Virus record (IMG/VR): IMGVR_UViG_3300043418_000114
Location: 62,001 to 126,000 of that record
Reading direction: 5' to 3' (one strand)
DNA: 64,000 nucleotides
Each line of letters opens with the position of its first letter. The stretch's first letter is position 1. Positions 5,713-62,260 of this stretch are shown here, one piece after another. Under the pieces are notes generated by a model. It made no database searches. It was not told where the DNA came from and saw only the letters and a program-made list of their open reading frames with translations. A program made the position numbers and the translations under genes.

Positions 5713-5714
5713 TC

Positions 5715-6047
5715 ATGCGTTTATACGAGTTTGCTAACTCAGATCCGCAAGTTACATCCTTGATCGCTATCAGTAATCAATTAAAAGATGACATTGATAG
5801 CGGGCGAGCCGATTCTAACTGGACGGTAGATGAATTGCTCCAGTATTTTCACGAATACGGCATCAATCTATCTCCTAGTGACTTGAGAAGTATGATCACA
5901 CACCCACCATTGAAGAATGTTATCAGTAACATTCAAGGTGATCAGGTTGTTTTTGCTGGACAGGACACTGGAACTGGCGAAGAAGACGATGAAACACAAA
6001 ATCAAGAAGTCGTTGCACAAATGGCAAAGAGCGCAATGCCAAGCTAA
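5715..6047 (+). CDS. Hypothetical acidic protein (MRLYEF N-terminus)
   Basis: 110-aa ORF in operon. Confidence 0.65.
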   Translation: MRLYEFANSDPQVTSLIAISNQLKDDIDSGRADSNWTVDELLQYFHEYGINLSPSDLRSMITHPPLKNVISNIQGDQVVFAGQDTGTGEEDDETQNQEVVAQMAKSAMPS

Positions 6048-29580: not shown

Positions 29581-29605
29581 TAAATATATAATACAGGATT
29601 TTAAA

Positions 29606-30229
29606 ATGCGAAGCCTAAAACAATACATAATGGAAAGTGTAAAAACATACAATTACACTATCAAAATCGCCGGTGAAGTCGATAAAAACTGGGTAGACAT
29701 GTTCAAGCACAACTTGACCAAGTTTGACCCTGTGAAAATATCTGACCCAATCAGCACACCTATTCAAAAAGATCCATACGGATTTCCTAACGTATCTAAT
29801 CAGCCAGTGACTATCATTAAAGCTGAGTTTAGATATCCAGCAACTGAGCCAATGATTCAACAAATTGCACAGTTGTTAGGTTATAACCTAAACATGGTTC
29901 GAGTTATCGGCGCACAGTTCGACGATAGTATCAACAGTGAATCAGACGCATATGCAAATGAAATGAAGCATAGCCCAGTCCTAACTCATGAAGAATTAGA
30001 AGAACAACCTGGTGCTAAAGAAGCCAATAAAGCATACGCTGGATCATACTTGCAATCTATTAAAGATCAAATGCAAGGTTCAAAGATTGATATTCCATAT
30101 GCGGGTAACAAAACTCCAGATGCGTTTGATCCATTCAAGCCATATCTAGATGACAAGGCACAGGGTGACAATAGTCCTATGACTAAGATTACTCGTCCTC
30201 CAAAGCCACAAACTGGCGCTAATAAATAA
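29606..30229 (+). CDS. Hypothetical head-associated protein (start ATG 29606, MRSLKQYIME)
   Basis: Late box 29581, AGGA RBS. Confidence 0.6.
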   Translation: MRSLKQYIMESVKTYNYTIKIAGEVDKNWVDMFKHNLTKFDPVKISDPISTPIQKDPYGFPNVSNQPVTIIKAEFRYPATEPMIQQIAQLLGYNLNMVRVIGAQFDDSINSESDAYANEMKHSPVLTHEELEEQPGAKEANKAYAGSYLQSIKDQMQGSKIDIPYAGNKTPDAFDPFKPYLDDKAQGDNSPMTKITRPPKPQTGANK

Positions 30230-44968: not shown

Positions 44969-45778
44969 ATGGATCATTATCAAACTCTCGGAGTGGCTAA
45001 AACAGCCACTGCCGACGAAATCAAAAAAGCATATCGCAAACTTGCAAGTCAACACCACCCAGACAAGGGTGGTGATACTGCTAAATTCCAAGAAATTCAA
45101 ACAGCATACGATACTCTTTCTGACCCAAACAAGCGTCAAGAGTATGATAATCCGCGACCACAGTTTCAAGACTTTGGTGGTGGATTCCCAGGTGGCTTTA
45201 GTTTCCATCAGGGTGGTGGATTTGAAGACTTGTTTGAAATGTTCAATAGACACAACAATCAACAACGTAGACAACAACAAGTCTTTAGAACGGCAGTTCA
45301 AGTTAGTTTGTTTCAGGCATATCATGGTGGCGAACAAGCTATTAAATTGCAGACACATACTGGAATACACGGCGTGAATATCACTGTGCCCGTTGGTGTT
45401 AATAATGGTGATCAAGTTCGCATTGATAATGTAATCGATGGAGCATCATTATTGATTGAGTTCAGAATTCAGCCAGATTTGCGTTTTGAACGCAGAGGTC
45501 ATGATTTAATTGCAACTCAACAAGTGTCAGTTCTGGACCTTATCGTTGGAGGTTCATTTGAATTTACGTCATTAGCTGGCAAAACATTCGAAGTGAATAT
45601 TAAGCCAAAAACACAACCGTATGTTCAGTTGCGTATTCCTGGTCAAGGCATGCCAATAGGGAATTCTGGAAAATTTGGTGACCAAATTATATTGATTAAG
45701 CCCTTTATCCCTGATATGATCGATGAACAAGTTATTAATAGCATTAAGCAACAACAACTTAACTCTGGAGTAAAATGA
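44969..45778 (+). CDS. dnaJ: DnaJ-class co-chaperone (J-domain, G/F region, C-terminal domain, no Zn finger)
   Basis: HYQTLGV...[18 protein letters not shown]. Confidence 0.93.
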
Positions 45779-48039
45779 TTAATTCACCTGAAATTGAAAG
45801 CATTATCGAGAATGCGATTGAACTTGCGAAAACTCGTAAGCATCAATACTGTACCCTAGAACACTTGCTTCTAGCACTTGTCAGCCATCAACCATTCAAG
45901 AAATGTGTTGGTGGATTTGGCGCTGACGTTGACTCGTTGATTGCTGAACTGGGAACCTATCTAGATAGTCTTCACGCTATCGAAAGTAAAGACCCTGACG
46001 TTAACCCTCGCAAGACTAACGCACTTGAACGTGCCATTAATCGCAGTGTTACTCAAGTATTGTTTACTGGTCGTCGCCAAGTAACCACCATCGACTTTTA
46101 TTTGTCTATTGCCGCAGAAGGCAACAGTCACGCACATTACTTCCTGTTGAAGTATGGCATCAACAAGAATGAGTTCGTTGCTTACTGGCAAAAGAACTAT
46201 AAAGGCCAAGAGTTCACTAGCTCATTGACCGAAAATCAAGCTGATGAAATCCTTGAAGAATACACCACTAATTTGAGTCAACTTGCCAAAGCAGGCAAAC
46301 TTGAGCCTCTGATTGGTCGAAGCAAAGAATTGGATGATATCGTTAACGTTCTCGCTAAACGATTCAAAGCTAACGTGTTGATGGTTGGCGATCCTGGTGT
46401 TGGTAAGACTGCAATCGCAGAAGGTCTAGCTAACATGATTCAAGAAGGCAATGCTCCTGAGTTCCTAACTGACCACGAAGTATATTCACTTGAAGTTGGC
46501 GCATTGCTTGCTGGTAGTAAGTATCGTGGTGACTTTGAAGAAAAGGTCAAAGCTGTCCTTGATGCTCTGAACACCAAGAAGAAAGCTATCTTGTTCATTG
46601 ACGAAGCTCATACTATGAGTGGCGCAGGCTCAAGTAACAATGGTGGTCCTGACTTTGCTAACATGATCAAGCCTGCAATCACTAAGGGTACACTGAAAGT
46701 TATTGCAAGCACAACATGGGAAGAGTTCTACGAATCATTTGAGAAGGATCGTGCCTTGATGCGCCGATTCTATCGTGTTGCAATTGACGAGCCTAGTCAA
46801 GAATCTACCGTTCGCATTCTGTCTGGTTTGTCTACTCGCCTAAACGACTTCCACAAAGTCAACATCACAGAAGAAGCGATCAAGGCGGCAGTCGAAAGCT
46901 CTGCCCGATATATCCATGATCGTAAGAACCCTGATAAGTCGATTGACTTGTTAGATGCCGCATGTGCTAAACAACGTGTAGCGAACAACGAAGGTGCAAC
47001 CATCACCAAAGAATTGGTGTTTGAACAAGTTGAGAAGTTCACTGGCGTACCAGCCGATAAACTCAGTGGCGACAACTACGATATGATTAGTAACCTAGAT
47101 GTGAACGTCAAAGGCAAGTTGTATGGCCAAGATGAAACAGTTGACCAAGTTCTAGAACGTGTGTATGTTTCATTCGCTGGTATCAACAATGATACTAAGC
47201 CAACTGCAAGTTTCTTATTCTTGGGCCCAACTGGTACAGGTAAAACTGAACTAGCTAAGTTGCTGTCTAAGAATCTTGACATGCCGTTGCTCAAGTATGA
47301 TATGTCTGAATACGGTGAGAAACATTCAGTCTCTAGTTTGATTGGACCTCCTCCAGGCTATGTTGGCTTCGGCGACAGTCAAGTTGGTGGCGGTCGATTG
47401 ATTAGCGACTTGAGTAAGAACCCGCACTCAATCATGTTGTTTGACGAAGTTGAAAAAGCTCACCCTGATATTTTCAACATCTTCCTGCAAATGCTTGATG
47501 AAGGTACTATTACAGGCTCGAACGGCAAGAAGGTTAGTTGCAAAAACTCTATCATTATCTTGACTTCCAACTTGGGTAGTGCTGATGGTGAACGCAATCA
47601 GATCGGCTTCGGTAGTCAAGAAAAGACTGGCGAAGATGATAAAGCATTGAAAGACTTCTTTAAGCCAGAGTTCCGTAATCGTCTTGATCTTGTATGTAAG
47701 TTCAACAAGCTCGATGGTCTTGCAATCAAGAAAATCGTTGTTAAGTTTACCGAAGACTTAAAGAAACAGTTGCTCGATAAGCACAACATTACATTCAATC
47801 TAAGCGAAGGCGCCATTGAATATCTAGCAGAACAAGGCTATGATAAGAAGATGGGCGCACGACCACTAGCACGTAAAATTGACGAACTAGTGCGAGTTCC
47901 ACTATCGAAAAAGATTCTGTTTGAGCGTATCAAAAACGCAAACATCACCGCAGTGATGGGCACAGACGGTATCGAATTCAACGTAGTGAACACCACAACG
48001 GCACGAGTAGGCGAAGATGGCATTATTGAAGTCAATTGA
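45775..48039 (+). CDS. clpA: ATP-dependent Clp protease ATPase subunit, ClpA-like
   Basis: Clp N-domain, two AAA+ modules ([16 protein letters not shown]), IGF ClpP-docking loop, GARPL. Confidence 0.93.
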
Positions 48040-48739: not shown

Positions 48740-48775
48740 CTGTGATAAATACTCTATTATAATGGAGTATTTACC

Positions 48776-49333: not shown

Positions 49334-50536
49334 ATGTCTACTATCGTCATTATGCCAGGTGGCTTTCATCCGTTTCATGCAGGTCATAAAAACTTGCATG
49401 AATCTGCAACGGCAGCCTTCCCTGATGCAAGTATCTATATTGCCGCAACTGACGACACAAAGACTCGACCATTCCCATTTGCAGTCAAGGAGAAATTAGC
49501 CAAAGTATCTGGCATTCCTTCTGGCCAATTCGTTCAAGTAAAGAGTCCCTTTCAGCCACGTGAAATCACAAGTCAATTCGATCCTAATGCGGATGTGTTG
49601 ATCTTTGTCCGTAGTGAGAAAGATAAAAACGAAAGCCCTACTCCGGGTGGTACCAAGAAAGATGGAAGTCCTAACTACTTTCAGCCTTATACAAAAGGTC
49701 AACTACAACCTTTTGCTAAACACGCATACATGGCATATCTACCTACTGTAGAGTTTGGCCCTGGCCTAACAAGTGCAACAGAAATTCGTGATGCATGGGC
49801 TACATTAGATGAAAGACGCAAAACAGCGTTAGTCATGAGTTTGTACCCAGCTACTCAAAAGAACAAACGATTGGCTGATGTAGTTGTTAAACTACTAAAC
49901 TCCGCACTTGGAGGCACTACTCAAATGAACGAAGAACAAAGCATGATACAAGTGCCTAACAACATCGCAAATACTGTTGCTGAATTACTCAATCACAAGA
50001 AACCAGACCTGTTCACTAGATATGGCCCTGAATACGTAATGAATATTGTTCAGGATGTATGTGCAGATGCACCTACTAAGTCAATTCATGAATTGGCAAT
50101 CGAGACACTACTGCGCCTAAAGGCAAAGGTTAAAAAGAAAGCCAAGTCATTGAGTGAAAACATGGTGATTGGATGCTGTCCTAACGAAAGTCAGGGATTG
50201 CCTATGCCAGGTACTTACGAACAGGAATATGACATGTACAAAACACATGGTCCTAAGCGTATTACCGCACTCACCACCGAAGATTCTGATGCAGGTGATA
50301 GGGAAGTACAGGCGATGCTAAGATTCGCTCAACAGCATTATCCTGAAGCGTCCAAGCAGGAAGCATTCATGAAGTTCGTACTACATGCATTAAAGCATTC
50401 CGAACAAGATGATAATCGTCAAGATCAGGCGATCCAGTCATTGGATCATGACGTTGACCAAATTGAGCATGAAGTTGATAGTCTAGAACATAAGCCTAAT
50501 ATTGCCGAAAATAGGGATTATCTCGAAGAAAAATAA
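49334..50536 (+). CDS. Cytidylyltransferase-like (HxGH) nucleotidyltransferase with appended C-terminal modules
   Basis: MPGGFHPFHAGH, SATEIR; junctions MNEE, LSEN, TTED, IAEN. Confidence 0.75.
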   Translation: MSTIVIMPGGFHPFHAGHKNLHESATAAFPDASIYIAATDDTKTRPFPFAVKEKLAKVSGIPSGQFVQVKSPFQPREITSQFDPNADVLIFVRSEKDKNESPTPGGTKKDGSPNYFQPYTKGQLQPFAKHAYMAYLPTVEFGPGLTSATEIRDAWATLDERRKTALVMSLYPATQKNKRLADVVVKLLNSALGGTTQMNEEQSMIQVPNNIANTVAELLNHKKPDLFTRYGPEYVMNIVQDVCADAPTKSIHELAIETLLRLKAKVKKKAKSLSENMVIGCCPNESQGLPMPGTYEQEYDMYKTHGPKRITALTTEDSDAGDREVQAMLRFAQQHYPEASKQEAFMKFVLHALKHSEQDDNRQDQAIQSLDHDVDQIEHEVDSLEHKPNIAENRDYLEEK

Positions 50537-50585
50537 TTCGAGCACCTCTTTAAAGAGTAAATATTTTCATCTTTAAGAGGACCTT

Positions 50586-51470
50586 ATGGCAAAGAAACAA
50601 AAAACAGAAGAAAAAACAGTTCCAGTAGAAAAAGTACTGGAGATCGCTGAACAAGCCGCACAAGAACAAAAACCTGCAGAGGGTCAAGTTCAAGTTAACG
50701 TAGACTTCCTACGTACAACTCGCGTACACATCGCAATGCCTTGCTACGGCGGCATGTTGACTGAATCTACATTCATGTCTTTTATCAAGTGGGCAAATAC
50801 CGCTCGTCAATTGGGCATCGATTGGACATTGGAAACAATGGTCAATGAATCATTGATTAGCCGCGCTCGTAATACCCTAACTGCTAAGTTCTTGGATATG
50901 GATGATGCCACTCACTTGTTCTTTGTTGACGCTGATATTGGCTGGGAACCATGGCACTTGCTAGTGTTGTTGAATCGTGACGTTGACGTTGCGGCTGGCC
51001 TATACCCAATGAAGACAATGCCAATCAAGTGGGTTGTTAACGGCTTCGAAGGTGCAGAAGAAGGACCAGACGGATTCCAGGAAGTATCTAAAGCGGGTAC
51101 AGGCTTCTTGTTGATCAAGAAACACGTTTTCGAGAAGATGAATTCTCACCCTGCCGTCAAGCAATACAAGAATGATATTGGCTTAGATCCAAAGTTCGAC
51201 AAGTACTTAAAGACTTACTTCGACACCGCAGTTCGTCAGAATCGTTACTACAGTGAAGACTGGACATTCTGTGAAAACTGGCGCGATCTAGGTGGTAAAA
51301 TCTGGGTTGATAAGCGCATCTTGTTGCGTCACAGTGGTTCATATGTATTCTGCATGGAAAACCAGCAACACTTGATGAACACAATCGGACCAATGTATGT
51401 TGAAGAAAAGAAACAACAAGGTCTAAGACTAGTTGATAAAGACGGAAACGAAGTCAATATTCAACAGTAA
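50586..51470 (+). CDS. Glycosyltransferase-like protein (GT-A fold)
   Basis: IAMPCYGG, ESLISRARN, LFFVDADI, GTGFLLI, YSEDWTFC. Confidence 0.8.
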   Translation: MAKKQKTEEKTVPVEKVLEIAEQAAQEQKPAEGQVQVNVDFLRTTRVHIAMPCYGGMLTESTFMSFIKWANTARQLGIDWTLETMVNESLISRARNTLTAKFLDMDDATHLFFVDADIGWEPWHLLVLLNRDVDVAAGLYPMKTMPIKWVVNGFEGAEEGPDGFQEVSKAGTGFLLIKKHVFEKMNSHPAVKQYKNDIGLDPKFDKYLKTYFDTAVRQNRYYSEDWTFCENWRDLGGKIWVDKRILLRHSGSYVFCMENQQHLMNTIGPMYVEEKKQQGLRLVDKDGNEVNIQQ

Positions 51471-51472
51471 TC

Positions 51473-51496
51473 AAAAGCCCCTTCGGGGGCTTTTTT
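51473..51496 (+). terminator. Rho-independent terminator with UUCG loop
   Basis: AAAAGCCCC-TTCG-GGGGCTTTTTT. Confidence 0.9.
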
Positions 51497-51517
51497 GTTA
51501 TGGGTATAAATAGATTT

Positions 51518-51622
51518 ATGAGTTGGTTCAGAAGAATTCCACCAAAACACCCTCCCTACAGAACAGTACCTGTTCAGCCTGTAATACCTATCCCTGAAAA
51601 TAAAGACCCTAAGCGAAAGTAA
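51518..51622 (+). CDS. 34-aa proline-rich cationic peptide (below ORF-track cutoff)
   Basis: MSWFRRIPPKHPPYRTVPVQPVIPIPENKDPKRK; TATAAATA box 5 nt before ATG. Confidence 0.55.
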   Translation: MSWFRRIPPKHPPYRTVPVQPVIPIPENKDPKRK

Positions 51623-51641
51623 TAGTGATAAATACATTACT

Positions 51642-53957
51642 ATGAATTTGCGTGAATTAGACTCTTTTAAATTAGCGGATGCCGTCACTTTCCATGACGA
51701 ACTTAATCCAAAACTGTGGCACAACAATCAGTTGCGTCCCGAGGTGAAGGAACAGCTAATCCTAATCACAGAAGACTTCCTATCAGAATTAGGTATACCA
51801 GACGTTGATGTTGATGATATCACCGTATCAGGGTCAAATGCCGCATTCAGCTACACACCACACTCAGACTTGGATCTACACTTGCTTGTTGATATGAGCA
51901 GGTACGATGATGACATTTACAAAGAATTTTTCAACGCCAAAAAAGCATTATATAACGAAGCACACGATATTAAAATTCATGGGGTACCAGTAGAAGTATA
52001 CGTACAAGATTCCAGAGAACCCGTCGTAAGTCTAGGTGAGTACAGTGTATTGCAGGATAAATGGCTTAGAATCCCAACTAAGCGCAGAGCAAACTTTGAT
52101 CAAACAACCACTCAAGCAAAATATAACACACTTAAAGAACTAATTGAATTAGCCCTAAAGAGTAAGAATCTCAAAAAAGTAGAAAAAATCACACGCAAGA
52201 TTAAACAGTATCGACAAGCAGGACTAGACAAAGGGGGCGAGTTTGGTCCTGAAAACTTAGCATATAAAGCATTACGCAGTCAGGGTTATATCACCAAGCT
52301 ATATGATTTGCGTGATAAACTACACAGTGAAATCTTGACCATTGAAACGATGTATCAAGATCCAACTCAAATGATTGAGGAAGAAGATGAACAAAAGTTG
52401 CCACCAAAAGTGTATCATGTTACACCTGCTAGCAACTTAGACAGTATCATGAAAGCTGGATTACGTCCACAAGTTGGTGCACGTTCCAGTCAGATACCTG
52501 GCGAACAATCAGCTATATACTGCTTCCCTGACAAAACTTCACTAGAAGATGCCATGATGAATTGGCTTGGTGATGAATTCGATGAAGACGAAGAATTAGC
52601 TTTGTTGGAAATTGACACCTCTAACTTAACAGGCGAGTATACTCCAAATGCTGAGTTTGAGATTGCAATCACTTCCCTAATTCCACCCAATCGTATCAAA
52701 GTATTGTCTAGCAATCTAGCTACAATCACCGAATCGGATGTTAACATTACTCCTGTTGAAAAGACACTGCCTGTTACGCCATACGGCAACAAAGAAAGAC
52801 AGTTTCGTGGTTCAATAGCAGAGGGTTTCGATCAACCATACCCACTTACATGGGAAAAGAGCGAATACGGTGACGTTGACGCACTAGCTAAATTACCAGA
52901 TGGTACTCCATTGAGCATCATGTTTAACGACGAAGGTGATGGCACTGTACAGGTTGAGTTCTATAGAAACAATAGCCAAGAAGTCACAGGCGAAGGCGAT
53001 GCAATGCGAGTATTCGCTACTGTATTAACTGCTATTCAACATTACGTTCAGGAATATGAACCTGAGAAATTAAAGTTTTCAGCAAGCAAAGATAACTGGG
53101 CAAAACAGCAACAAAACAGCGAAAGCCGTGCTAGTCTATATGATAAATTGGTTCAGCGTTATAGCAAATCATGGGGCTATGGTGCATCTAGATCCGACAA
53201 AGGGGACTTTGTTTTGTACCAATTGACTAGAATAAAAAAAAAGTTAGCGACCACTGAATCTTGGGAATTTGCTCCTGCTAAAATCGATAGTTCTCTTTTA
53301 CAAGAATCAATCGAAGAATATTTCAAAAAAGATGGAAAATATTTTCCACATAGAATTCACGGTGCCCATCAACTAATACGTCATTACGATAAAATCGTTG
53401 AATCAGTGGAAACTGATGTAAAAGATTTCTGGCATCAGATGGCTAGCTTGGACAAGCGCAAGGAAGTAAATTTAAAACCTGGCAATAGTGTGAGTGTGAT
53501 CCAATGCTGGACTCATCTTTATGATTCTATTTTTGAGTTGAAGGGCAACTTGACACCCAAAGAAATCGTTAATGTAGAATATGATGATGACGGAAAGGTT
53601 CAATATATCGAATTCAAAGACGGATCATCGTTTCCAGATAAGGCATTTATTGATAGAAACCAAGGTGGCAATTTAGATGGCATTGTCACTACTTTCTTCC
53701 CGACCAAACAAACAGCAAGTCATGCAATTACTGTATTGCATTTATGTGTTCCTGCAGGCTGGGAGTTAAGCAGAAAGAATCTCTCGGAAGCATCTGGCTA
53801 CATTCCATCTGAAAAAGAGAAAAATGACCCTCGTTTCAAGACTGCCCTAACAGTAGATGTTAAGCCTGATGCAGTTAAAAAGAACGCTAAATCCTTCAAC
53901 TGGAAGACCACCAGAGCAGGTATTCCTCCAACAGCGAACCCTAATGGCAAATTCTGA
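51642..53957 (+). CDS. Multidomain effector: Pol-beta-like nucleotidyltransferase + ART/Tpt1-like domain + further modules
   Basis: VSGSNAAFSYTPHSDLDLH (GS...DxD); VYHVTPASNLDSIMKAGL; EVTGEGDAMRVFATV; junctions IEE, ITES, IAEG, LQES, LSEA. Confidence 0.75.
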   Translation: MNLRELDSFKLADAVTFHDELNPKLWHNNQLRPEVKEQLILITEDFLSELGIPDVDVDDITVSGSNAAFSYTPHSDLDLHLLVDMSRYDDDIYKEFFNAKKALYNEAHDIKIHGVPVEVYVQDSREPVVSLGEYSVLQDKWLRIPTKRRANFDQTTTQAKYNTLKELIELALKSKNLKKVEKITRKIKQYRQAGLDKGGEFGPENLAYKALRSQGYITKLYDLRDKLHSEILTIETMYQDPTQMIEEEDEQKLPPKVYHVTPASNLDSIMKAGLRPQVGARSSQIPGEQSAIYCFPDKTSLEDAMMNWLGDEFDEDEELALLEIDTSNLTGEYTPNAEFEIAITSLIPPNRIKVLSSNLATITESDVNITPVEKTLPVTPYGNKERQFRGSIAEGFDQPYPLTWEKSEYGDVDALAKLPDGTPLSIMFNDEGDGTVQVEFYRNNSQEVTGEGDAMRVFATVLTAIQHYVQEYEPEKLKFSASKDNWAKQQQNSESRASLYDKLVQRYSKSWGYGASRSDKGDFVLYQLTRIKKKLATTESWEFAPAKIDSSLLQESIEEYFKKDGKYFPHRIHGAHQLIRHYDKIVESVETDVKDFWHQMASLDKRKEVNLKPGNSVSVIQCWTHLYDSIFELKGNLTPKEIVNVEYDDDGKVQYIEFKDGSSFPDKAFIDRNQGGNLDGIVTTFFPTKQTASHAITVLHLCVPAGWELSRKNLSEASGYIPSEKEKNDPRFKTALTVDVKPDAVKKNAKSFNWKTTRAGIPPTANPNGKF

Positions 53958-54000
53958 TTGCGTAGTATTTTGATAAATACTATATCAACTCGGAATTCCC

Positions 54001-55098
54001 ATGAAAATCAATCAAATTATCGTTGAAACATCAACAACATCTGGTTCAATCTCCACTGTAGCACAACCTCTAGGCGAAGTTCAAGCTCGTTCAGTTAGTG
54101 GACTAGAGCCAGCAGAAAAAGTAATGAAGGGCAAAGCCAAAAAGAAGGGCCCTTATGCCAACTCTATTAGTGAAAGCAAGAAAAAAATCAAAGAAGCTGA
54201 ACTATCTGAGGAAGATGTAATTTTAGTTCCAGGTCAAGGTCGTCAATTCAAGCCTGGATTTCACAAGATTGACCCAGATAGAGCAGAACGCGAAGGCGAA
54301 ACCCTAAAGAACAGCCTACACACTATCATTCGTGTTGCTACTGCATTAGACGAAGAATTATCAACCAGAGATAACTTTCCAGAGTGGGTATCAGAGAAAA
54401 TTGGTGCCACTAAAGGCATGCTAGTGTCGATTGCAGACTACTTGATCAGTGCAGACGAAATGCAACATGATCCAGATGCAATGGAAGACATTACTGGAGC
54501 TGGCGTAATCGCTGGTGGCGCTCAATACGAAGGTAAGAACGTAGATCGCATGGTCAAACACATTACCAAGTCAGAAGAAAAAGCTGGCAAGTCACATGAT
54601 GAGGCAGAAGACATTGCATGGGCAACTGCTAACAAGCGTGGCATGTTAGATAATAAGAATAAAAAGAAACGTGCAGACGAAGGCGTTATGGACGTACTTA
54701 AGAATAAGTTCGGCAAGAAGCCAGCACCAGCGGCTCAGCCACGTGTTGAGCCAACACTTAATGCACCACAGCAATCAAAGCAACGTGTTCGTAAGCCAGC
54801 GGCATCAAGTAATCCATTTGGTAACATGATATCACAAATCACTCAGCCAGAAAAGCCTACGTTCAAGCCAACTAGCACAGGCTCAGTTGCACAGACTAGC
54901 ACAGGCATGATTCATGCTCCTAAAGCTAGCAATCCAAATTTAAAAGCACAATCAGCAGGAGCTGGACAACAGGTTCCAGTGAAGCAAAAATTAGATCCAA
55001 ACAGAATCATGAATGGTATTATGACATTGAACGACAATGAGTTCAAGCAAGTAGTAGATTTCGTGCGTAATCAAATCAGAAAAGGCCGCCCAGCATGA
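54001..55098 (+). CDS. Modular low-complexity putative internal head protein
   Basis: MKINQIIVE start; junctions ISES, IKEAE, LSEE, ADEG. Confidence 0.55.
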   Translation: MKINQIIVETSTTSGSISTVAQPLGEVQARSVSGLEPAEKVMKGKAKKKGPYANSISESKKKIKEAELSEEDVILVPGQGRQFKPGFHKIDPDRAEREGETLKNSLHTIIRVATALDEELSTRDNFPEWVSEKIGATKGMLVSIADYLISADEMQHDPDAMEDITGAGVIAGGAQYEGKNVDRMVKHITKSEEKAGKSHDEAEDIAWATANKRGMLDNKNKKKRADEGVMDVLKNKFGKKPAPAAQPRVEPTLNAPQQSKQRVRKPAASSNPFGNMISQITQPEKPTFKPTSTGSVAQTSTGMIHAPKASNPNLKAQSAGAGQQVPVKQKLDPNRIMNGIMTLNDNEFKQVVDFVRNQIRKGRPA

Positions 55099-58000
55099 GC
55101 AACATTTTTAAAGGTATTAAGCAGTTAAACGAGGTCGATCCTCGTAACTTTGACAGTGACATTGACTACTACGATGCACTGAATAGAAAGCCACGTGGTC
55201 GTAGCGAAGACGATTATGTAGATCCATCAGAAAAATATGATGAACCTATCGCCGCGCAAAAGAAGATCACTCGTCCTGAATATTCTATCAGTGATGATGA
55301 AGACAGAAAAGCTGGTTATAACATGACTCTAACTGTTAAGGCACCAACTACTCAGGCGGCTGAATGGGCAGCCAGTAGTTATGTTGATAGCAACTGGGGC
55401 GCCAAGAAACAAATTGGCAAGATTACTCCAATCGCTGATGGCGTTGTTCAAGTTCACATGGTTGACAATCACAAGTATGGTATGTGGAAGCCTTGGAAAG
55501 ACGAAGCTCCAACCCAAAAGCCTATTAGTTTCAATGAAGAACAACTAGATGAACTAAGCCCAGATACATTAGCTAGCTATAAAAAGAAAGCTGGAGCACA
55601 CGCTAGTGAACTAGACAAAGCCGCTTGGGGTGGTGCACCTGATGCACAACAAAAGATCAACAAAGCGAACAAGCGTTTCAGTGGTATCATTCGTGCTACT
55701 AAGAAAGAACTTGACAATGACGTTAAGGGCATTAAAGAAAACGCAGAAGAATTGAATATGGGTGATCCAGTTGTTGTAACTGGTGACGTTCAATTTAATG
55801 GAACTACTGGTGATATCGTTGGTTTTAGCAATGACAAACACTTTGTTATCGTTGACCTATACAATCATGGTAAGCGTAGTTTTCATTCAAGTGATGTAAG
55901 TTTCAATGACTATGCAGACAGTGACGATGAACATGAACATATCAATCGTGTTGCGGAAGACGAACAACAGTCTCCAAACACTGATTCAATCTTAGAATAT
56001 TTAACTAAAGCCGCTCGTAGTTTGCAACAGAATAAAGATATGTTCTCGCCAGAAGGCTGGGAAAGAATCAAGCGTAGTTATGAATTCTTACGTAGCTATT
56101 TGAAAGATGGCGACTATGAAGGTTTCCTATCAGCATACAATGAAATCTTGCGTAGTTATCCAGATTCAACTGGTCTATTGATTGACGAAATGTTTGCTAT
56201 GGCTGGTCTAGATGAAAACGCTACAATCGAAGATTTCTTAGCTAAAACATCTGAACTTGATGAAGGTCGAGTAAAAGATATCGCCGTTCAACGTCTTGAT
56301 TGGGAAGACATGAGTCCTCAACAATTCAATGGTCAATATGGCAGAACTAAGAATGACTGGGAAGGTCAATTCTCTAGACTGATGAACCCAAAGAAAGCTA
56401 AGGCTAAAAAGACAAGTGCACCAAAATCAACACGCGAGTTGGACTACTGCCCAACATGCCAACGTGGTGATAATCGTTGCGTATGTGAAGATCAGTCTAT
56501 ACAAAAAGGTACTCCTATCACAGTAACGTCAATCAAAGGTACAGTGTATAAAGGTACATTTGAACATGAGAATGAAAATTCAGTTGTTATGAAGACAACT
56601 GGTCGTGGTGGTAATCCACACACTAGCGCAATCGTTCCAGAAACTCATGTAGTTGCAATTAAGAAGTCACACATCAAGTCAATGACTCCTGAGTTGGCAG
56701 AAGATTTACCTCCACCAGAGAACGCACGTAAGACACAAATCGCAGGCACTCTACCTACATACAAGAAAGCCGCTGATATCTTGAACAAGACTGGCGTACA
56801 AGGTAAAGCACTTGACTTTGGTGCTGGTTTAGGTATGGGTACTGGTGAATTGGGTCCTGATGCACATAGCTATGAACCATTCCCTGGCGAAAAGTTCAAG
56901 CCACACTTTGTTGATGTAACAAAGATTCCAGATAACAGCTATCACAAGATTGTTAACTTGAACGTTCTAAACGTTGTACCTAATACAGGTGAACACAAGA
57001 TTCGTGATTCTATTGTTAAGAACATCGGTCGTGTATTGGCACCAGGTGGTGTTGCACTAATCACTACTCGTGGTAAAGATGTGTTAACAATCAAAGGCAC
57101 TCCTGGCGAAGAGCCAACTAGCATGATCAGTAAGATTGGTACATATCAAAAAGGCTTTACACAAAAAGAATTGTTGCAATACATTCAGCAAACATTGGGT
57201 AAAGGTTTCGAAGTATCTAGTATCAAACTAGGCCCAGCTGGCGTAATGATCAAGAAATTGGATCATCAAGGTGTGGCGGAAGGCTCTGAAAATATTCTTC
57301 CAAGAGGAACATCCGTAACAGTCCTACATAAAGGCAAGCAAGTACCTGGTAAAATTGTTAGATATGATGCTGGCAAAAATGGTTATTCAAATGCCTATGT
57401 AGTTGATGTTGGTGGATATGAATCTATATTTGTGCCAGCCAGTAAAATCCAAACGCAAGGTGTGGCGGAAGATACCGGCGACAACAAGTTTGACGCTATG
57501 ATGTCCAACGTTACTTCTAAGAAGTCACTACATGCTAGAGAAGCACTAGGCTTAATGAATGAATTAATTTATCAAGGTGGCGCATCATATAAAGAAGCAC
57601 TAGACCAAGCAAGCACAAGTTTTGAAATCGATCCAGCTAAGTTACATCAGCTATATCAACAAGACATTCGTGCATTAGATGAAGCTGAGTCTAAGCCAGT
57701 CAACATGAAGCGTTGGTTGCGTGACTTCGAACGTAGAGAAGACAATAACTTCCATACTGAAAACGTATTGGCGATGGCACAATTAGTTGGCACACCAGAA
57801 GATGTTGCAACTATGAAAAGTTTGGTAAAGCAACACAGAGGTTTTGGTCTATCTGAGAAACAGTTTGAGATTCGTCATGCAATCGCAGATAGATTGCGTC
57901 CACTAGTCAAGCAAAAGATTCAAGATAGTCAAGCACAAGAAATGGAAGAAGGTAAAACTGGACCAGGTCTATGGGCAAACATCCATGCAAAGCGTGAGCG

Positions 58001-58517
58001 TATCAAGCATGGTTCTGGTGAGAAGATGCGTAAGCCAGGTAGCAAAGGTGCACCAACTGCCGATAACTTTAAATCTGCACAAGCTGGTACCAACGAAGAC
58101 GTAGTTGATGAAGATTGGAAAAAAGTCAATCAACACGATAAGACTGATGGCATGAGCAAGAAAGCAGTCAAGGCTTATCGTAATGAGCATCCAGGTTCTA
58201 AACTACAAACAGCAGTTACTAAGAAGCCAAGTGAATTGAAGGCAGGTAGCAAAGATGCTAAACGCCGTAAATCTTTCTGTGCCAGAATGAGTGGCATGAA
58301 GGGTCCAATGAAGGATGAACATGGTAAGCAAACTCCAAAAGCTAAAGCATTAGCACGTTGGAACTGTGAGTCTATTGAACAGATGGAAGAGTTAGCAATG
58401 ATTGCCGAACAGAAGATTCAGGAAGCAAAAAATGCTAAACAACAAGCCGCAATTGCTATTGCAAAGAAAGAGAAAAAAGTCTCTGAAAGCAATATCATGA
58501 AGGGCATTAAAAAATGA
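55095..58517 (+). CDS. 1140-aa modular polyprotein incl. class I SAM methyltransferase, SH3/KOW-like modules and a DUF6321-like basic domain
   Basis: ALDFGAGLG...NLNVLNVV; RRKSFCARMSG...ARWNC; modules bounded by LNE, LDE, IKE, VAE, LAE, MEE, VDE. Confidence 0.7.
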   Translation: MSNIFKGIKQLNEVDPRNFDSDIDYYDALNRKPRGRSEDDYVDPSEKYDEPIAAQKKITRPEYSISDDEDRKAGYNMTLTVKAPTTQAAEWAASSYVDSNWGAKKQIGKITPIADGVVQVHMVDNHKYGMWKPWKDEAPTQKPISFNEEQLDELSPDTLASYKKKAGAHASELDKAAWGGAPDAQQKINKANKRFSGIIRATKKELDNDVKGIKENAEELNMGDPVVVTGDVQFNGTTGDIVGFSNDKHFVIVDLYNHGKRSFHSSDVSFNDYADSDDEHEHINRVAEDEQQSPNTDSILEYLTKAARSLQQNKDMFSPEGWERIKRSYEFLRSYLKDGDYEGFLSAYNEILRSYPDSTGLLIDEMFAMAGLDENATIEDFLAKTSELDEGRVKDIAVQRLDWEDMSPQQFNGQYGRTKNDWEGQFSRLMNPKKAKAKKTSAPKSTRELDYCPTCQRGDNRCVCEDQSIQKGTPITVTSIKGTVYKGTFEHENENSVVMKTTGRGGNPHTSAIVPETHVVAIKKSHIKSMTPELAEDLPPPENARKTQIAGTLPTYKKAADILNKTGVQGKALDFGAGLGMGTGELGPDAHSYEPFPGEKFKPHFVDVTKIPDNSYHKIVNLNVLNVVPNTGEHKIRDSIVKNIGRVLAPGGVALITTRGKDVLTIKGTPGEEPTSMISKIGTYQKGFTQKELLQYIQQTLGKGFEVSSIKLGPAGVMIKKLDHQGVAEGSENILPRGTSVTVLHKGKQVPGKIVRYDAGKNGYSNAYVVDVGGYESIFVPASKIQTQGVAEDTGDNKFDAMMSNVTSKKSLHAREALGLMNELIYQGGASYKEALDQASTSFEIDPAKLHQLYQQDIRALDEAESKPVNMKRWLRDFERREDNNFHTENVLAMAQLVGTPEDVATMKSLVKQHRGFGLSEKQFEIRHAIADRLRPLVKQKIQDSQAQEMEEGKTGPGLWANIHAKRERIKHGSGEKMRKPGSKGAPTADNFKSAQAGTNEDVVDEDWKKVNQHDKTDGMSKKAVKAYRNEHPGSKLQTAVTKKPSELKAGSKDAKRRKSFCARMSGMKGPMKDEHGKQTPKAKALARWNCESIEQMEELAMIAEQKIQEAKNAKQQAAIAIAKKEKKVSESNIMKGIKK
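57267..57471 (+). repeat. Perfect 16-bp in-frame direct repeat CAAGGTGTGGCGGAAG (57267-57282, 57456-57471)
   Basis: Read directly; 189-nt period; both copies encode QGVAE. Confidence 0.9.
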
Positions 58518-58583
58518 ACCAGGACACCTTTGAATTCTACTGGAATCGCAAAGGTGCCCCTCCAGTAAAGAGTAAATAGAACT

Positions 58584-59024
58584 ATGTTATCAGATAATTT
58601 AAAAGTATTACTAGCAAGCACTCAGTCGTTTGCTATCAAATCTCAGAACTTTCATTGGAATATTGAAGGGTCTGACTTCCCACAATATCATGCATTCTAT
58701 GATACTCTTTACGGAGATGTAGCAGAAACTATTGACAAAATCGCTGAGTATATCAGAATTTTGGGACACTACACGCCTGGCAGTCTATCACGCTACAGTG
58801 AATTGTCAATCATCCAAGATCAAACAAAGATTCCACGTGCTGAATTGATGTTTCAAGAATCACTACACGATACTCAAGTAATGATTGAATTGGTTCAAGC
58901 TATGTTTGATGAAGCTACCCAAGAGCGTCAACAAGGCATTGCCAACTACATGGCTGAATTACAAGACCTATATGCCAAGAAAGCATGGTTCATTCGTTCT
59001 ATCTTAAAGAAAGACCGTGAGTAA
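58584..59024 (+). CDS. dps: Dps / ferritin-like DNA protection protein
   Basis: FHWNIEGSDFPQYH, IDKIAEYIRILG, KKAWFIRS. Confidence 0.9.
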   Translation: MLSDNLKVLLASTQSFAIKSQNFHWNIEGSDFPQYHAFYDTLYGDVAETIDKIAEYIRILGHYTPGSLSRYSELSIIQDQTKIPRAELMFQESLHDTQVMIELVQAMFDEATQERQQGIANYMAELQDLYAKKAWFIRSILKKDRE

Positions 59025-59704
59025 TGAGAGCGTTTGAGTTTTTAGGAGAACAAATTGTTGATGAAATGCCGCTACCGGCAGATTGGGATGCATCCCAAAT
59101 GCGTCAACAAAGTACTACATTCAAATCTCGCTTGGCATACGCATTAGAACGCGCCAAGAAGCTAGGAACAGGTTCTAGTCGTGTTGCCACCGTGATCGAA
59201 TATCAGGGTCGTCCTACAGTGCTTAAAATCGCTAAGAACGCCAAGGGTCTAGCACAGAATAGTGTAGAGGCAGATATTCTCAGTGATGGTTATGGCAGTC
59301 AACTTGGCATTCTTATCCCTATCATTGACTATGATGAACAGAATCGTGAACCAAGTTGGATTCACACTGAAATGGCACAGAAGGCTACTGACAAGCAATT
59401 AAGCACCATCATGAAATGTGGTGATCTGTCCATGCTAGTTCATGCCGCCAACTCAATCGCAGGTAAAAAAAGTTTCTACTCGTATGATAGCGTGGTGAAA
59501 TATTTAAGAGAACATGGTTCTAGTGACAGTGATATCGAAACATTTACTGACTATGCAAACGTTCTAGCTGACCTTGCAAACTCATTTGATGTTGAATTGG
59601 CTGATATGGCACGTGCCGCGAACTGGGGATTATATCACGGTAAACCGGTTATTGTTGATGTTGGTTTCAACAGCAACGTTATGAATCAATATTACAAAAA
59701 ATGA
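59024..59704 (+). CDS. Protein-kinase-like fold protein
   Basis: MRAFEFLGE start; LGTGSSRVA Gly loop, VLKIAK, QNSVE, DMARAANWG, IVDVG. Confidence 0.65.
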   Translation: MRAFEFLGEQIVDEMPLPADWDASQMRQQSTTFKSRLAYALERAKKLGTGSSRVATVIEYQGRPTVLKIAKNAKGLAQNSVEADILSDGYGSQLGILIPIIDYDEQNREPSWIHTEMAQKATDKQLSTIMKCGDLSMLVHAANSIAGKKSFYSYDSVVKYLREHGSSDSDIETFTDYANVLADLANSFDVELADMARAANWGLYHGKPVIVDVGFNSNVMNQYYKK

Positions 59705-60252
59705 GAGCAGAAGAATTCCTATTTGAGTTTGAATTACCAAAGAACAAATGGGAATTGGTAGTATCTAATGGTGATAAAGAAGAATTAGGTTCTGATTTAG
59801 TTTCTCTAGTTAGACATGCTTATAGTAATACTCCACACGGTAGTTTTGTAAACAGTATAAAAGATGTCATTCCAAGTGATTGGAATGTCATTGATTGGGA
59901 CCAAGATCCAGACGTTGATAGTTGTGTGTTCTATCGCAGTAATAGACCTACTGAAAATTGGACAGGATACAAGATTCAAGGAATCGGACATGATGGCTCA
60001 CGTACTAGTAAAGATAAAGCAATAAATAAAGTACAAGAGCTACTGAGTAGACCAGGCGTTTGGATTGAATCAAGTGACGCAATGCGCCATTTATTGAAAA
60101 AATTAAATGTCCAGTCAATCAATGATGAGCAATTTTTACAACATCTATTTAATGATCCCAATCTAAAAATGGTCAGTGACGACACATACACAAGAGCATT
60201 AAGTGGTGGTAATGTAACAGAGACAGTATTTGGATATCCTAAATTAAAATGA
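59701..60252 (+). CDS. Hypothetical protein, possibly GNAT-like
   Basis: MRAEEFLFE start; ATGA overlaps. Confidence 0.6.
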   Translation: MRAEEFLFEFELPKNKWELVVSNGDKEELGSDLVSLVRHAYSNTPHGSFVNSIKDVIPSDWNVIDWDQDPDVDSCVFYRSNRPTENWTGYKIQGIGHDGSRTSKDKAINKVQELLSRPGVWIESSDAMRHLLKKLNVQSINDEQFLQHLFNDPNLKMVSDDTYTRALSGGNVTETVFGYPKLK

Positions 60253-61442
60253 GAGCTACAGAATTTATCACAGAACGTAACAACGGCACTCGCTGGACAG
60301 GCGATGAAATCTATCGTCAAATTGGTGATGAATGTCTCACTGAACTTTTCGAGCCAGGTAAGCCATTTGAATGGGATTTTCGTGGCAGTGAGGAGGCACA
60401 TGCATCATTTACGATAGGCAATGTGCCATATAGATTTACTGCACATACCAACGGTGGTAATCAGTGGGAAATAGAATTCAAAGTAGATAAGAATACATCT
60501 GATAAGAACGCCAAGTATGGACGTACTGGCACTGGCAACTCAGCAGAAGTAATGTCAACAGTCACTGATATCATGCGCGACTTTCTGGGCATGTACAAGG
60601 ACAAAATTAAATATTTGACCTTCAGCGCGGAGGAAGAATCTAGAAAATCATTGTACATGAAAATGGCAAAGCGATTACTTCCTACATGGCGTCTCGGCAG
60701 TAACGATAAAATATATTGGTTAGCTAATCCAGATCATTTAGACGAAGGCGTAGTTGACTGGGCCAAGAAGGGTGCCGCGGCAGGTGCAATTGCACTCGGT
60801 GCATTAGGAGCTGGTGGTGCTGGAGCAAAGCAAATGCCACAACAAGTTCAAAAGCCTGCAGTTATTCAGCCTGCTAAAAAAGTTCAACCACAAGCACAGC
60901 AACAAACAAAAGCACCTGAGCAATTCAATGTGTTAAGTAACAACATTAACAACGAGATTACTCTACAAAGAGCCGCCAGAAAAGCAGGCATTAAGGGGCA
61001 AGAGTTAGCACAGTTTATGGCGCAAATGAAACACGAAAGCTGGGATTTTGAGCGCATGAAAGAGAAAGCACAACCAGGTGTAAAAGACTATTATGCCAAA
61101 CGTTACGACTTAAAGTATTCACCAAAGACAGCGAAGATTTTAGGCAATAAACATGCGGGTGATGGCGCAAGATATCATGGTCGTGGTTTCGTTCAACTAA
61201 CTGGCAGAGACAACTACAGAATGGCAAGTGATGCGTTGGGTATTGATCTATTGAATCACCCTGAACTAGCTAGTAAGCCAGATGTTGCCGCAAAAATAGC
61301 AGTATGGTATTGGAATACAAGAGTTAAGCCTAGTGTTCAAAACTTTGCAGATACTGTAGCAGTGACTAAGAAGATTAACCCAGCGGCAAGAGGTCTAGAG
61401 AATAGACACGAGAATTTTAAAGACTACATGAAAATAATATGA
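60249..61442 (+). CDS. Modular protein with C-terminal GH19 lysozyme domain
   Basis: MRATEFITE start; RTGTGNSAEVMSTV domain; LDEG junction; FMAQMKHES, YHGRGFVQLTG, VTKKINP. Confidence 0.8.
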   Translation: MRATEFITERNNGTRWTGDEIYRQIGDECLTELFEPGKPFEWDFRGSEEAHASFTIGNVPYRFTAHTNGGNQWEIEFKVDKNTSDKNAKYGRTGTGNSAEVMSTVTDIMRDFLGMYKDKIKYLTFSAEEESRKSLYMKMAKRLLPTWRLGSNDKIYWLANPDHLDEGVVDWAKKGAAAGAIALGALGAGGAGAKQMPQQVQKPAVIQPAKKVQPQAQQQTKAPEQFNVLSNNINNEITLQRAARKAGIKGQELAQFMAQMKHESWDFERMKEKAQPGVKDYYAKRYDLKYSPKTAKILGNKHAGDGARYHGRGFVQLTGRDNYRMASDALGIDLLNHPELASKPDVAAKIAVWYWNTRVKPSVQNFADTVAVTKKINPAARGLENRHENFKDYMKII

Positions 61443-62260
61443 TAAAAATTATAACAACAGCATTATTACTACTTGCTTCAACCCAAACATTTGCATGGAC
61501 ACAGCGTCAACCGCTACCTGTTCAACAATGTCAAGTACACGCACCGTATGGATTTCCTAATACACAGGGTGTACAACCTCTATGCCAACAAGCATATCTA
61601 GTAGGATATGATGCGGCAGCCAAACTACCAAAATTTGTTACTTATGAATTACTTCCTCAAAACGCACTGGGATGTGTTGCTCGTACTAATGCTTTTGTCG
61701 CTAACCAGTTTGTGCCTGGTGGAGCTAGACCAGATGACTACACAGCGACTGGCTTTGACAAAGGCCATGCCGCACCAGACGGTGACTTGTCATGGGACCA
61801 ACAAGTAGAATATGAATCATTCTTGATGACTAACATGTATCCACAAAAGGGTTCATTGAATCGTGGTATTTGGAAATTATTAGAAACTAGTGTACGTGGT
61901 TGGACAGTACAGCGCAATCAAAGCTATACAATTTATGTTGGTGGAATATACAATACAGCTACTGATAAGAAGATCGGCCAAGGTGTAGTTGTGCCAACAG
62001 CATTCTATAAGATCGTTATCAATAATCAAACTAAAGAGATTGCTGGTTGGGGATTCCCTCACGTTGAGCCATATCCTAACTTAGGTAATGACTTAACTAA
62101 GTTCCGTGTTCCAGTTGCGACCCTAATGCAACAGGCCGGAGTTCAATATGCATTCCCACAAGGAGCAATCGAACTACAGCCTGGCAAAGAGTGGGCAGTT
62201 GACTTTGGCGCACTCACTAAAGCAAAACGCACCAAATGTGGCGCGAATGCAGAAGATTAA
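61439..62260 (+). CDS. Secreted DNA/RNA non-specific endonuclease (NucA/EndoG family)
   Basis: Signal peptide; FDKGHAAP, FLMTNMYPQ, LNRGIWKLLE, VPTAFYKI. Confidence 0.9.
   Translation: MIKIITTALLLLASTQTFAWTQRQPLPVQQCQVHAPYGFPNTQGVQPLCQQAYLVGYDAAAKLPKFVTYELLPQNALGCVARTNAFVANQFVPGGARPDDYTATGFDKGHAAPDGDLSWDQQVEYESFLMTNMYPQKGSLNRGIWKLLETSVRGWTVQRNQSYTIYVGGIYNTATDKKIGQGVVVPTAFYKIVINNQTKEIAGWGFPHVEPYPNLGNDLTKFRVPVATLMQQAGVQYAFPQGAIELQPGKEWAVDFGALTKAKRTKCGANAED

Follow-up and report, generated by a model that had tools for sequence, protein, structure and literature searches.

A shared N-terminal leader and [VLI]-x-E-separated modules in late proteins of a jumbo phage suggest an enzyme arsenal loaded and cut in the capsid

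The DNA analysed here, a stretch of 64,000 nucleotides that we call the window, spans positions 62,001-126,000 of the 364,247-bp contig IMGVR_UViG_3300043418_000114 (JGI Ga0451735_000014). It encodes late proteins that begin with a short leader and, in several cases, are built of shuffled modules separated by [VLI]-x-E sites. This organization suggests an arsenal of enzymes that would be loaded into the capsid and cut there. We consider the best explanation to be a loading system like that of the phage T4 capsid-targeting sequence (CTS), coupled to processing by a prohead protease and extended to modular polyproteins, and we give this reading a probability of roughly 0.6. A first-pass annotation of the window had already proposed a head-loaded arsenal of polyproteins. 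Comparison with relatives supports that proposal, indirectly, through the leader, the module junctions, the cargo and counterparts detected by mass spectrometry (MS) in Pseudomonas phage PA5oct.

Four proteins encoded in the window begin with MRAxEF[IL]xE, at 20862, 59024, 59701 and 60249 (proteins are named here by the first nucleotide of their gene). The first-pass annotation had noticed this shared start on otherwise unrelated proteins, and we found no similarity between the four past residue 9. Translation of the 64 kb in all six frames gives only five instances of EF[ILVM]xE, four of them at the MRAxEF[IL]xE gene starts. The shared N-terminus is genuine, and chance falls far short of explaining it. 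Other leader types were found on further genes, with lengths of 5-15 residues across types. The leaders in the window are:

20862-20888, plus strand: leader MRAKEFIYE of the gene at 20862-21653
29606-29635, plus strand: leader MRSLKQYIME of the gene at 29606-30229; the family reads MKxFxxYLxE
30248-30292, plus strand: leader MNFKDMLAKMSQLSE of the 707-aa protein encoded at 30248-32371; family leaders read MSFFHNLNK...QLNE
54001-54027, plus strand: leader MKINQIIVE of the gene at 54001-55098
55095-55133, plus strand: leader MSNIFKGIKQLNE of a 1140-aa protein; the family reads MSNI[FL]KGLNE
59024-59050, plus strand: leader MRAFEFLGE of the gene at 59024-59704
59701-59727, plus strand: leader MRAEEFLFE of the gene at 59701-60252
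60249-60275, plus strand: leader MRATEFITE of the gene at 60249-61442

Homologues back the leader types of 55095 and 30248, and also two of the looser versions put forward in the first-pass annotation, MKINQIIVE (54001) and MRSLKQYIME (29606). Homologues of 59701 begin MKANALINE, MRASEL or MKASEL. The other two looser versions, MRLYEF at 5715 and MKLTEF at 4984, proved weak. They do not have the 9-residue form and match at most the 5-residue M[KR]LxE type of small head proteins, and in homologues of 4984 the leader Glu is often replaced by Asp. These two genes (MKLTEF... and MRLYEFANSD..., region 4984-6047) are adjacent, lie behind a late-promoter motif and occur as a neighbour pair also in one related locus (L019). 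A further, divergent member of the tagged set may be the DUF6267 protein encoded at 2349-3488 (Pfam, 1.1e-41), which starts with GTG and opens TVSLTALVE; its DUF6267 homologues in relatives bear MRAFEFLTE or MKTYTEYLVE leaders. About 30 kb of flanking sequence from the same genome contained no 9-residue tag, and the locus upstream of the window (L284) has a weak MRLYEF start.

The codons of the leader vary synonymously (GCA, GCG or GCT; GAA or GAG; TTT or TTC), position 4 is variable and the DNA 5' of the four tagged genes is not conserved. The synonymous variation together with the unconserved upstream DNA indicates that the leader is constrained at the level of the peptide. This bears on an explanation that we hold to be rather improbable, in which the N-terminal motif would serve expression or stability (as an initiation context, a degron or a site of chaperone recognition) and the [VLI]-x-E at junctions would be a fusion relic or a linker preference. 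Such a role in expression would fit with the observations that all four window tags begin ATGAGAGC, that three of them overlap the preceding stop codon as ATGA and that Arg is encoded by AGA in 195 of 216 tags, a count biased by the search pattern. However, the synonymous variation at Ala, Glu and Phe and the variable position 4 show selection on the peptide.

The distribution of the leader was examined with a degenerate DNA pattern in IMG/VR. At least 120 contigs with at least 158 matches were found, nearly all of them at the first start codons of open reading frames (ORFs), and 33 of the leader loci listed carry 2-4 matches. A control pattern made of the same codons in permuted order matched 15 contigs, all singly. 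Other genes (sheath, tube and others) are held in common with the window by 81 of the 120 leader loci listed, which marks the leader as a trait of this phage clade. Of 216 tags compared, 203 have I, L or V at position 7 and 199 have E at position 9, although the search pattern itself imposed both positions in most of them. The 1182-aa tail sheath encoded in the window has 45-46% identity to those of the jumbo myoviruses Pseudomonas PA5oct, Agrobacterium Atu_ph07 and Sinorhizobium Phosso. Matches in PHROG and Pfam were obtained for T4-type tail sheath, tube and gp15-like proteins and for a DnaB-type helicase, and the clade also has a T4-type clamp loader. The sheath identity and the PHROG and Pfam matches place the source, by sequence relationship, among the jumbo myoviruses of the T4 superfamily, in the PA5oct/Atu_ph07/XacN1 (PA5oct/Rak2-like) group. 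No GenBank phage gave a megablast match to the window region.

Leaders are exchanged between lineages in front of the same domain. The domain of 59024 that begins PLPADWD is preceded by MRAFEFLGEQIVDE/MPLPADWD in the window, by MKQVRLSQFLSE/APLPDDWD in ORF170 of the Xanthomonas jumbo phage XacN1 and by MKIYNLYSTLLE/APLPDDWD in Alishewanella phage vB_AspM_Slicko01, where the slash, here and below, marks the predicted cut. All of these lineage-specific variants close with [LIF]-x-E, immediately ahead of the conserved domain, which again argues against a motif for expression or stability. The 'TSGSVATVA' domain of 54001 likewise bears MKITQIVE or MRAQEFIKE in relatives. Slicko01 (OQ508956.1) is a cultured 141-kb phage with a leader type of its own, in which eight consecutive genes start MKIxxLYESLLxE (L122:2933-8603), and it would make a good experimental model. 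Tandem arrays of MRA-tagged paralogues of about 125 aa were seen in a number of relatives (L006, L007, L008, L032, L035, L042, L049, L058, L096, L103 and others). The gene before such an array often ends ...FKGYP[RK] and the isoelectric point (pI) of the arrays is ordinary; they may be counterparts of the hypervariable internal-protein loci of T4. The MRA tag also sometimes stands directly before a signal of the twin-arginine (Tat) type, MRAVEFIAEIDRRGFLGALGAGAMAAAGVP, mostly on GH19 modules (L011:2992-3612, L131:3540-4217, L133:7485-8147, L059:3858-4493); Pfam TAT_signal was matched in 1 of 77 tagged proteins. Removal of the tag would be predicted to expose an export or anchor signal.

The first-pass annotation had further claimed that domain boundaries in the long proteins repeatedly fall at (I/L/V/M)-x-E motifs. 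A bare count was not significant, with an N-terminal [ILVM]-x-E site in 14 of 61 genes against 8.5 expected, so junctions defined by homology were used instead. A junction was taken as the internal position in a multi-module protein that aligns to the last tag residue of a stand-alone tagged homologue, which yielded 76 non-redundant junctions from 55 proteins in 37 loci. The motif [ILVMF]-x-E lies exactly at 57 of these 76 junctions, compared with 0-1 at positions shifted by 10-30 residues. Glu occupies P1 in 66 of the 76, and P3 is Val in 26, Leu in 23 and Ile in 10 (59 of 76 together). Since BLAST tends to run an alignment on through an E that matches, the test has some bias. Double sites such as VNE/EIIDE/M are frequent at the junctions. 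The sites located in the window are:

58101-58112, plus strand: VVDE/DWKKVN in 55095 (residue 1006), directly before the basic DUF6321 module
57270-57281 and 57459-57470, plus strand: QGVAE/G and QGVAE/D in 55095 (residues 729 and 792), like a recurrent QGVAE/ junction in relatives
60333-60344, plus strand: CLTE/LFEPGK in 60249 (residue 32), aligned with MRAxEFITE/LFxPGK
60735-60746, plus strand: HLDE/G in 60249 (residue 166), the LDEG reported earlier
52812-52823, plus strand: SIAE/GFDQ in 51642 (residue 394), the IAEG reported earlier, before a DUF6934-type module
53778-53789, plus strand: NLSE/A in 51642, before the C-terminal module

The claim about boundaries thus holds at homology-defined junctions of 55095, 60249 and 51642. 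The strings quoted for it were located at residues 164-167 of 60249 (LDEG), 727-730 of 55095 (VAEG), 286-289 and 790-793 of 55095 (VAED), 362-365 of 51642 (ITES), 392-395 of 51642 (IAEG), and 714-717 of 51642 and 13-16 of 30248 (LSEA). It does not hold for 49334 and 50586, which have no leader and whose homology-defined boundaries are not at [VLI]-x-E sites. We saw no evidence that these two proteins, of which 49334 is a putative nucleotidyltransferase counted in the first-pass annotation, belong to the system.

N-terminal to P3 the junctions no longer look like a tag; of the former tag, P3 and P1 alone have been conserved and the remainder has decayed. Selection on a cleavage site would predict this pattern, whereas neutral relics would not. 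One relative retains a complete internal tag including its Met (...NMKINELDMVNE/DWQKVN), and such a fusion means that junction motifs can arise as relics, which is a point in favour of the alternative based on expression and fusion history.

The modules that these sites separate are predicted to be largely of effector type. The protein at 20862 would, by analogy of its domain content, be a functional analogue of T4 Alt. Long and modular proteins of the set, with two shorter neighbours, are as follows:

20862-21653, plus strand: 263-aa protein with leader, GNAT and an ART-PolyVal ADP-ribosyltransferase (Pfam ART-PolyVal 1.1e-20, Acetyltransf_1 8.5e-07)
51642-53957, plus strand: 771-aa multi-module protein with an N-terminal NTP_transf_2-like module and a conserved MNLRE start
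55095-58517, plus strand: 1140-aa multi-module protein with leader, methyltransferase-like middle and C-terminal basic DUF6321 (Pfam 2.5e-14)
59024-59704, plus strand: 226-aa protein with leader, a second site IVDE/ (59054-59065) and the 'PLPADWD' domain
59701-60252, plus strand: 183-aa protein with leader MRAEEFLFE
60249-61442, plus strand: 397-aa protein with leader, an 18-aa insert, a degenerate second tag ending CLTE/, a DUF6934-type 'A' module, HLDE/, a hydrophobic stretch and GH19

Among the enzyme types listed in the first-pass annotation, GNAT, ART (as ART-PolyVal) and lysozyme (as GH19) were recovered by Pfam, and the remaining assignments are leads. The C-terminus of 60249 is a GH19 module of the muramidase/chitinase type (Pfam Glyco_hydro_19, 1.7e-13), and it opens after HLDE/G with the hydrophobic stretch WAKKGAAAGAIALGALGAGGAG (60759-60827). 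The NTP_transf_2-like module of 51642 is a lead taken only from Atlas features; a DUF6934-type module follows at residues 392-516 and then a separate C-terminal module. A weak class I methyltransferase signal in the middle of 55095 is likewise a lead. So is the kinase assignment for 59024, which has kinase-like motifs (G.GSSRV, VLKIAKN, D..R..NWG, IIDxGF) and APH_6_hur as its best Pfam match (E 0.03-0.08); its AlphaFold model has a low pLDDT (predicted local distance difference test) of 59 and gave no significant Foldseek match, the weak matches being mostly kinases. Searches of PDB sequences by phmmer with 51642, 55095 and 20862 returned nothing useful.

Module content was also compared among relatives, as the first-pass annotation had suggested, and the same modules recur in two settings, alone behind a tag or as part of a longer tagged protein, where [VLI]-x-E stands at the point at which the tag would end. 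The PLPADWD domain stands alone in the window and is elsewhere the C-terminal module of tagged proteins of 360-744 aa. Stand-alone forms of DUF6321 start MRAIEFITE/DWNKVN, MKVNEIINE/DWQKVN and similar, and the DUF6934-type 'A' module and GH19 are also found alone. Tagged proteins of relatives contain up to four modules. By sequence homology, then, the GNAT, ART, GH19, DUF6321, DUF6934 and kinase-like modules are shuffled among relatives. A Pfam census of 77 tagged proteins gave GNAT in 11, DUF6934 in 9, GH19 in 8, DUF6267 in 6, LysM in 2 and ADP-ribosyltransferase, ParB_N, Kinase-PolyVal and tail lysozyme in 1 each, with no core replication enzyme among the 77. DUF6321 is very basic (pI 10). 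In T4-like cyanophages it is the C-terminal domain of a very basic protein of 430-455 aa (P-TIM68, L281:1481-2764; S-CAM8, L282:1364-2731), encoded directly before the large terminase gene in P-TIM68 and just after the small terminase gene in S-CAM8. By tblastn it also occurs in small podoviruses of Synechococcus and Pelagibacter.

A link to the head comes from cultured relatives. PA5oct gp333, a small head-module protein encoded between portal and scaffold, starts MKINDIITE/GYYNPADD and is annotated as detected in virions by electrospray ionization tandem MS (ESI-MS/MS; PMC7318152). The gp333-like protein in about 80 head modules starts MKA[KR][DE]LLVE/FYDP, MRAVEMLTE/FYDP, MRAKNLLVE/, MRLNE/FY or MKLFE/MF, so that the window tag and the leader of this small head-module protein follow one template. 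In the regions of PA5oct that were scanned (1-50 kb and 76-125 kb), the 9-residue form was found only on gp333. Three other PA5oct proteins are counterparts or share a leader type: gp282, the syntenic homologue of 29606 (E 4e-9) and annotated as a virion protein by ESI-MS/MS; gp281 (MFNINDILRLAGVQAVKE), which has the position of 30248 and is MS-detected, with no significant similarity to 30248; and gp279 (MKLFE/VF), annotated as a virion protein by MS. A gene for Peptidase_S77, the family of T4 gp21, lies next to that of the small head-module protein in PA5oct (Pfam 5e-24), and XacN1 also has one (ORF297). Peptidase_S77 was found in 2553 phage records, distributed over taxa in the same way as the 2645 records with a match to the window sheath. 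From this agreement with the sheath relatives we infer an S77 protease in the genome studied here. In three scans of IMG/VR for the protease, this contig was not among the matches listed (the best 80 of at least 600 in each).

These observations bear on two other explanations. The proteins could be packaged and cut, and yet be mainly disposable prohead-core or scaffold proteins (like T4 gp22, gp67 and gp68) or DNA-condensing proteins and not injected enzymes. We judge this the least probable of the alternatives, even though the small head-core protein has the same leader, 29606 and 30248 are located in the tail/head structural block, and the very basic DUF6321 belongs in cyanophages to a basic protein encoded between terminase genes. 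Many of the cargos are instead of host-modifying enzyme types (ART-PolyVal, GNAT, GH19, ADP-ribosyltransferase exoenzyme, ParB_N, Kinase-PolyVal), and T4 Alt gives a precedent for an injected enzyme (PMC9026906 and, in the passages retrieved, PMC5512222).

The leader and junctions could also be signals for a protease other than that of the prohead, either a peptidase domain of the polyproteins or Clp-type machinery, with products that act late in the producing cell or are exported. Export is what the Tat-like signal right after the tag in some relatives points to. A DnaJ-like and Clp-like pair is encoded at 44969-48039, XacN1 has a Clp protease near ORF170, 55095 has a Peptidase_C39-like match (E 0.0026), and polyvalent proteins are thought, according to passages of PMC5512222, to autoprocess via their own peptidases. 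The match in 55095 is, however, below threshold and most tagged proteins are without any peptidase. Moreover, a cut after Glu at [VLI]-x-E combined with an N-terminal leader of 9-10 residues is the form of a T4 gp21 substrate (PMC9026906), and the same leader type is carried by the conserved head-module protein that was MS-detected in PA5oct virions. On this evidence we consider processing by another protease unlikely.

The genes in question also appear to be driven by late promoters along with structural genes, which is a further argument for a prohead protease over the other proteases just considered. The T4 late promoter is TATAAATA. A motif one base off it, GATAAATA, occurs in 13 copies on the plus strand and 2 on the minus strand of the window, and it probably is this clade's version of the late promoter. 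It usually lies 12-36 nt before gene starts (4984, 7592, 26416, 29606, 32459, 48776, 51642, 54001), tail genes included. No copy was found in a 20-kb replication-gene locus downstream of the window (L381), and the upstream locus L284 has copies. At the level of motifs, this points to late-gene expression with head assembly. The plus-strand copies are:

2076, 3516, 4948, 7555, 10193, 26387, 29579, 32431, 39000, 43078, 48744, 51627 and 53972, plus strand: starts of the 13 copies of GATAAATA
29579-29586, plus strand: late-promoter-like copy ahead of 29606
48744-48751, 51627-51634 and 53972-53979, plus strand: late-promoter-like copies ahead of 48776, 51642 and 54001, respectively

Several results weigh against loading and cutting in the head as we propose it. 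Genes for the S77 protease, the portal and the capsid were not found in the roughly 115 kb examined, which comprised the window, searched also by tblastn with PA5oct head genes, and about 50 kb flanking it. When the tag was excluded from the alignment, which left 32 junctions, a site lay within 3 residues in 18, compared with 0-3 in shifted controls, so that the unbiased subset gives a weaker signal. The density of bare [ILVM]-x-E in the long proteins is 1.5-3 standard deviations over shuffled sequences and equally high in an unrelated Clp-like ATPase; generic enrichment of [ILVMF]-x-E at N-termini or in long proteins was rejected as evidence because it is not significant, and the bare-density form of the earlier claim falls with it. 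The E before DUF6321 is also kept in cyanophage proteins with Thr at P3 (TTNE/DW), and DUF6321 also occurs in podoviruses lacking S77; part of the junction signal could accordingly be intrinsic to the domain. PA5oct gp282 has Ala in place of the E of its family's leader. Virions of XacN1 contain a GH19 'chitinase' (PMC5852040), and this protein, ORF272, was rejected as support for packaged GH19 as it has no leader. Finally, the tagged proteins are not more basic than control ORFs, unlike the internal proteins of T4.

Under the reading that we prefer, CTS-like loading followed by prohead processing, the leader would dock each protein on the scaffolding core during prohead assembly. The activated prohead protease would then remove the leader and cut at the conserved [VLI]-x-E sites before each internal module. 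Multi-module precursors (60249, 55095, 51642 and the 20862 type) would be released inside the head as separate proteins, a predicted set of GNAT, ADP-ribosyltransferase, kinase-like, methyltransferase-like and nucleotidyltransferase-like domains, GH19 lysozyme and basic DUF6321, and at the following infection these would leave the head together with the DNA. All of this, from docking through cleavage and packaging to ejection and the roles of the enzymes, is inferred. A broader idea, which we offer tentatively as having somewhat less than an even chance, is that a T4-related and mostly uncultured clade of jumbo phages has a portable grammar. A leader of 5-13 residues and a [VLI]-x-E before each module would suffice to load any late protein or chain of modules, the protease would split the chain, and the capsid would serve as a combinatorial delivery vehicle for effectors of host takeover and anti-defence, with some Tat-type modules sent to the periplasm of the next host.

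If loading and cutting occur as proposed, the T4 capsid-targeting principle would be a general and evolvable loading system of environmental jumbo phages and not a T-even curiosity, and it would be combined with a use of polyproteins that is otherwise characteristic of RNA viruses of eukaryotes. The leader together with the [VLI]-x-E rule would predict which of the numerous uncharacterized jumbo-phage genes encode injected proteins. New enzymes of host takeover and anti-defence could then be sought directly, and the leader would be a ready tag with which to load foreign proteins into large phage capsids. Proteomics on the cultured relatives XacN1, PA5oct and Slicko01 could test the claim directly.

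Several further features surround the tagged genes. Two JGI assemblies of the contig, from different samples, are both 364,247 bp long and circularly permuted relative to each other, which suggests a complete genome. Positions 54001-62260 form one compact gene string in which stops overlap starts. Between tagged genes of this string, 58584-59024 encodes a Dps/ferritin-like protein without a tag (Pfam Ferritin 4.3e-17; PHROG 'DNA binding protein'), and its gene is kept beside tagged genes in 15 related loci. The final gene of the string (61439-62260) encodes a DNA/RNA non-specific endonuclease (Pfam 5.9e-38) with a Sec-type signal-like N-terminus, MIKIITTALLLLASTQTFA, and without a leader. Just 5' of the late block, the end of a DnaJ-like gene (44969-45778) runs into the start of a gene for a Clp-type AAA+ chaperone (45775-48039, 754 aa), both identified from N-terminal sequences only.

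The closest known system is that of T4. In T4, ten N-terminal residues are enough to target a protein to the head; residues 4 and 7 act in targeting and residues 8 and 10 direct gp21 processing (PMC9026906), and the T-even internal proteins are a diverse set with only the CTS in common (PMC9026906, PMC3012670). As the first-pass annotation had stated, the T4 leader is MKTYQEFIAE; we read MKTYQEFIAE/A at the starts of ipII and ipIII (NC_000866). The window shares with this system the EF-[IL]-x-E core, a hydrophobic P3, Glu at P1 and the late-gene context. In both, a short leader stands on unrelated, fast-evolving proteins, with ADP-ribosyltransferase cargo as in Alt. The clade also has a T4-type sheath, a gp15-like protein and a clamp loader, and its cultured members have an S77 protease. 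The window leader differs in being one residue shorter and in starting with MRA and not MKTY, and several leader types occur in one genome. The cargo differs as well, since it includes large multi-enzyme proteins with a site before each internal module, whereas multiple internal cuts in T4 itself are known only from core proteins, apart from a single C-terminal cut in Alt. The tagged proteins are also not conspicuously basic, and the system is known here from sequence.

The phiKZ-like phages (phiKZ, 201phi2-1, SPN3US) package and eject many head proteins, enzymes included, and have a gp21-related prohead protease (PMC5694885, PMC9026906). They too are cut after Glu at a three-residue motif, and their propeptides contain redundant sites, comparable to the double sites seen here (PMC9026906, PMC5694885). 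Their motif is, however, [A/S/G]-x-E and their propeptides often exceed 100 residues, whereas P3 here is V, L or I at 59 of 76 junctions and the leaders have 5-15 residues; the lineage of the phage is also different. The Dar/Ddr proteins of phage P1, compared via the literature only, are head-packaged and proteolytically processed proteins that counter defences, some of them large and multidomain, as described in passages of PMC5512222; they have no shared leader of this type and belong to another assembly pathway and phage family. The literature that we found on capsid-targeting sequences in jumbo phages comprised work on T4, phiKZ/SPN3US and P1, and in none of it did we find this leader, or polyproteins delimited by such sites, described for this clade.

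The domain repertoire is that of the polyvalent proteins, for which injection along with the DNA is predicted (PMC7824862 and the passages retrieved from PMC5512222). Those passages (Iyer, Burroughs, Anand, de Souza and Aravind, 2017) describe the same combinations of ART, GNAT, kinase, methyltransferase, ParB-like and lysozyme domains, with heavy domain shuffling and predicted delivery with DNA, as here. Several effector domains are likewise joined in one polypeptide in the window, with GNAT and ART-PolyVal in 20862, DUF6934 and GH19 in 60249, and methyltransferase-like and DUF6321 modules in 55095. A built-in peptidase (MPTase) or a MuF/portal linkage was not seen, as no Pfam peptidase scored above threshold; the only match was Peptidase_C39_2 in 55095 (18.8 bits against a cut-off of 24), and there was no peptidase among the 77 tagged relatives. 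Cutting by a capsid protease at [VLI]-x-E and entry by a CTS-like leader, which we propose here, are absent from the retrieved passages of PMC5512222. On balance, the leader and junction system is probably a variant of the T4 CTS/gp21 system merged with the architecture of polyvalent proteins.

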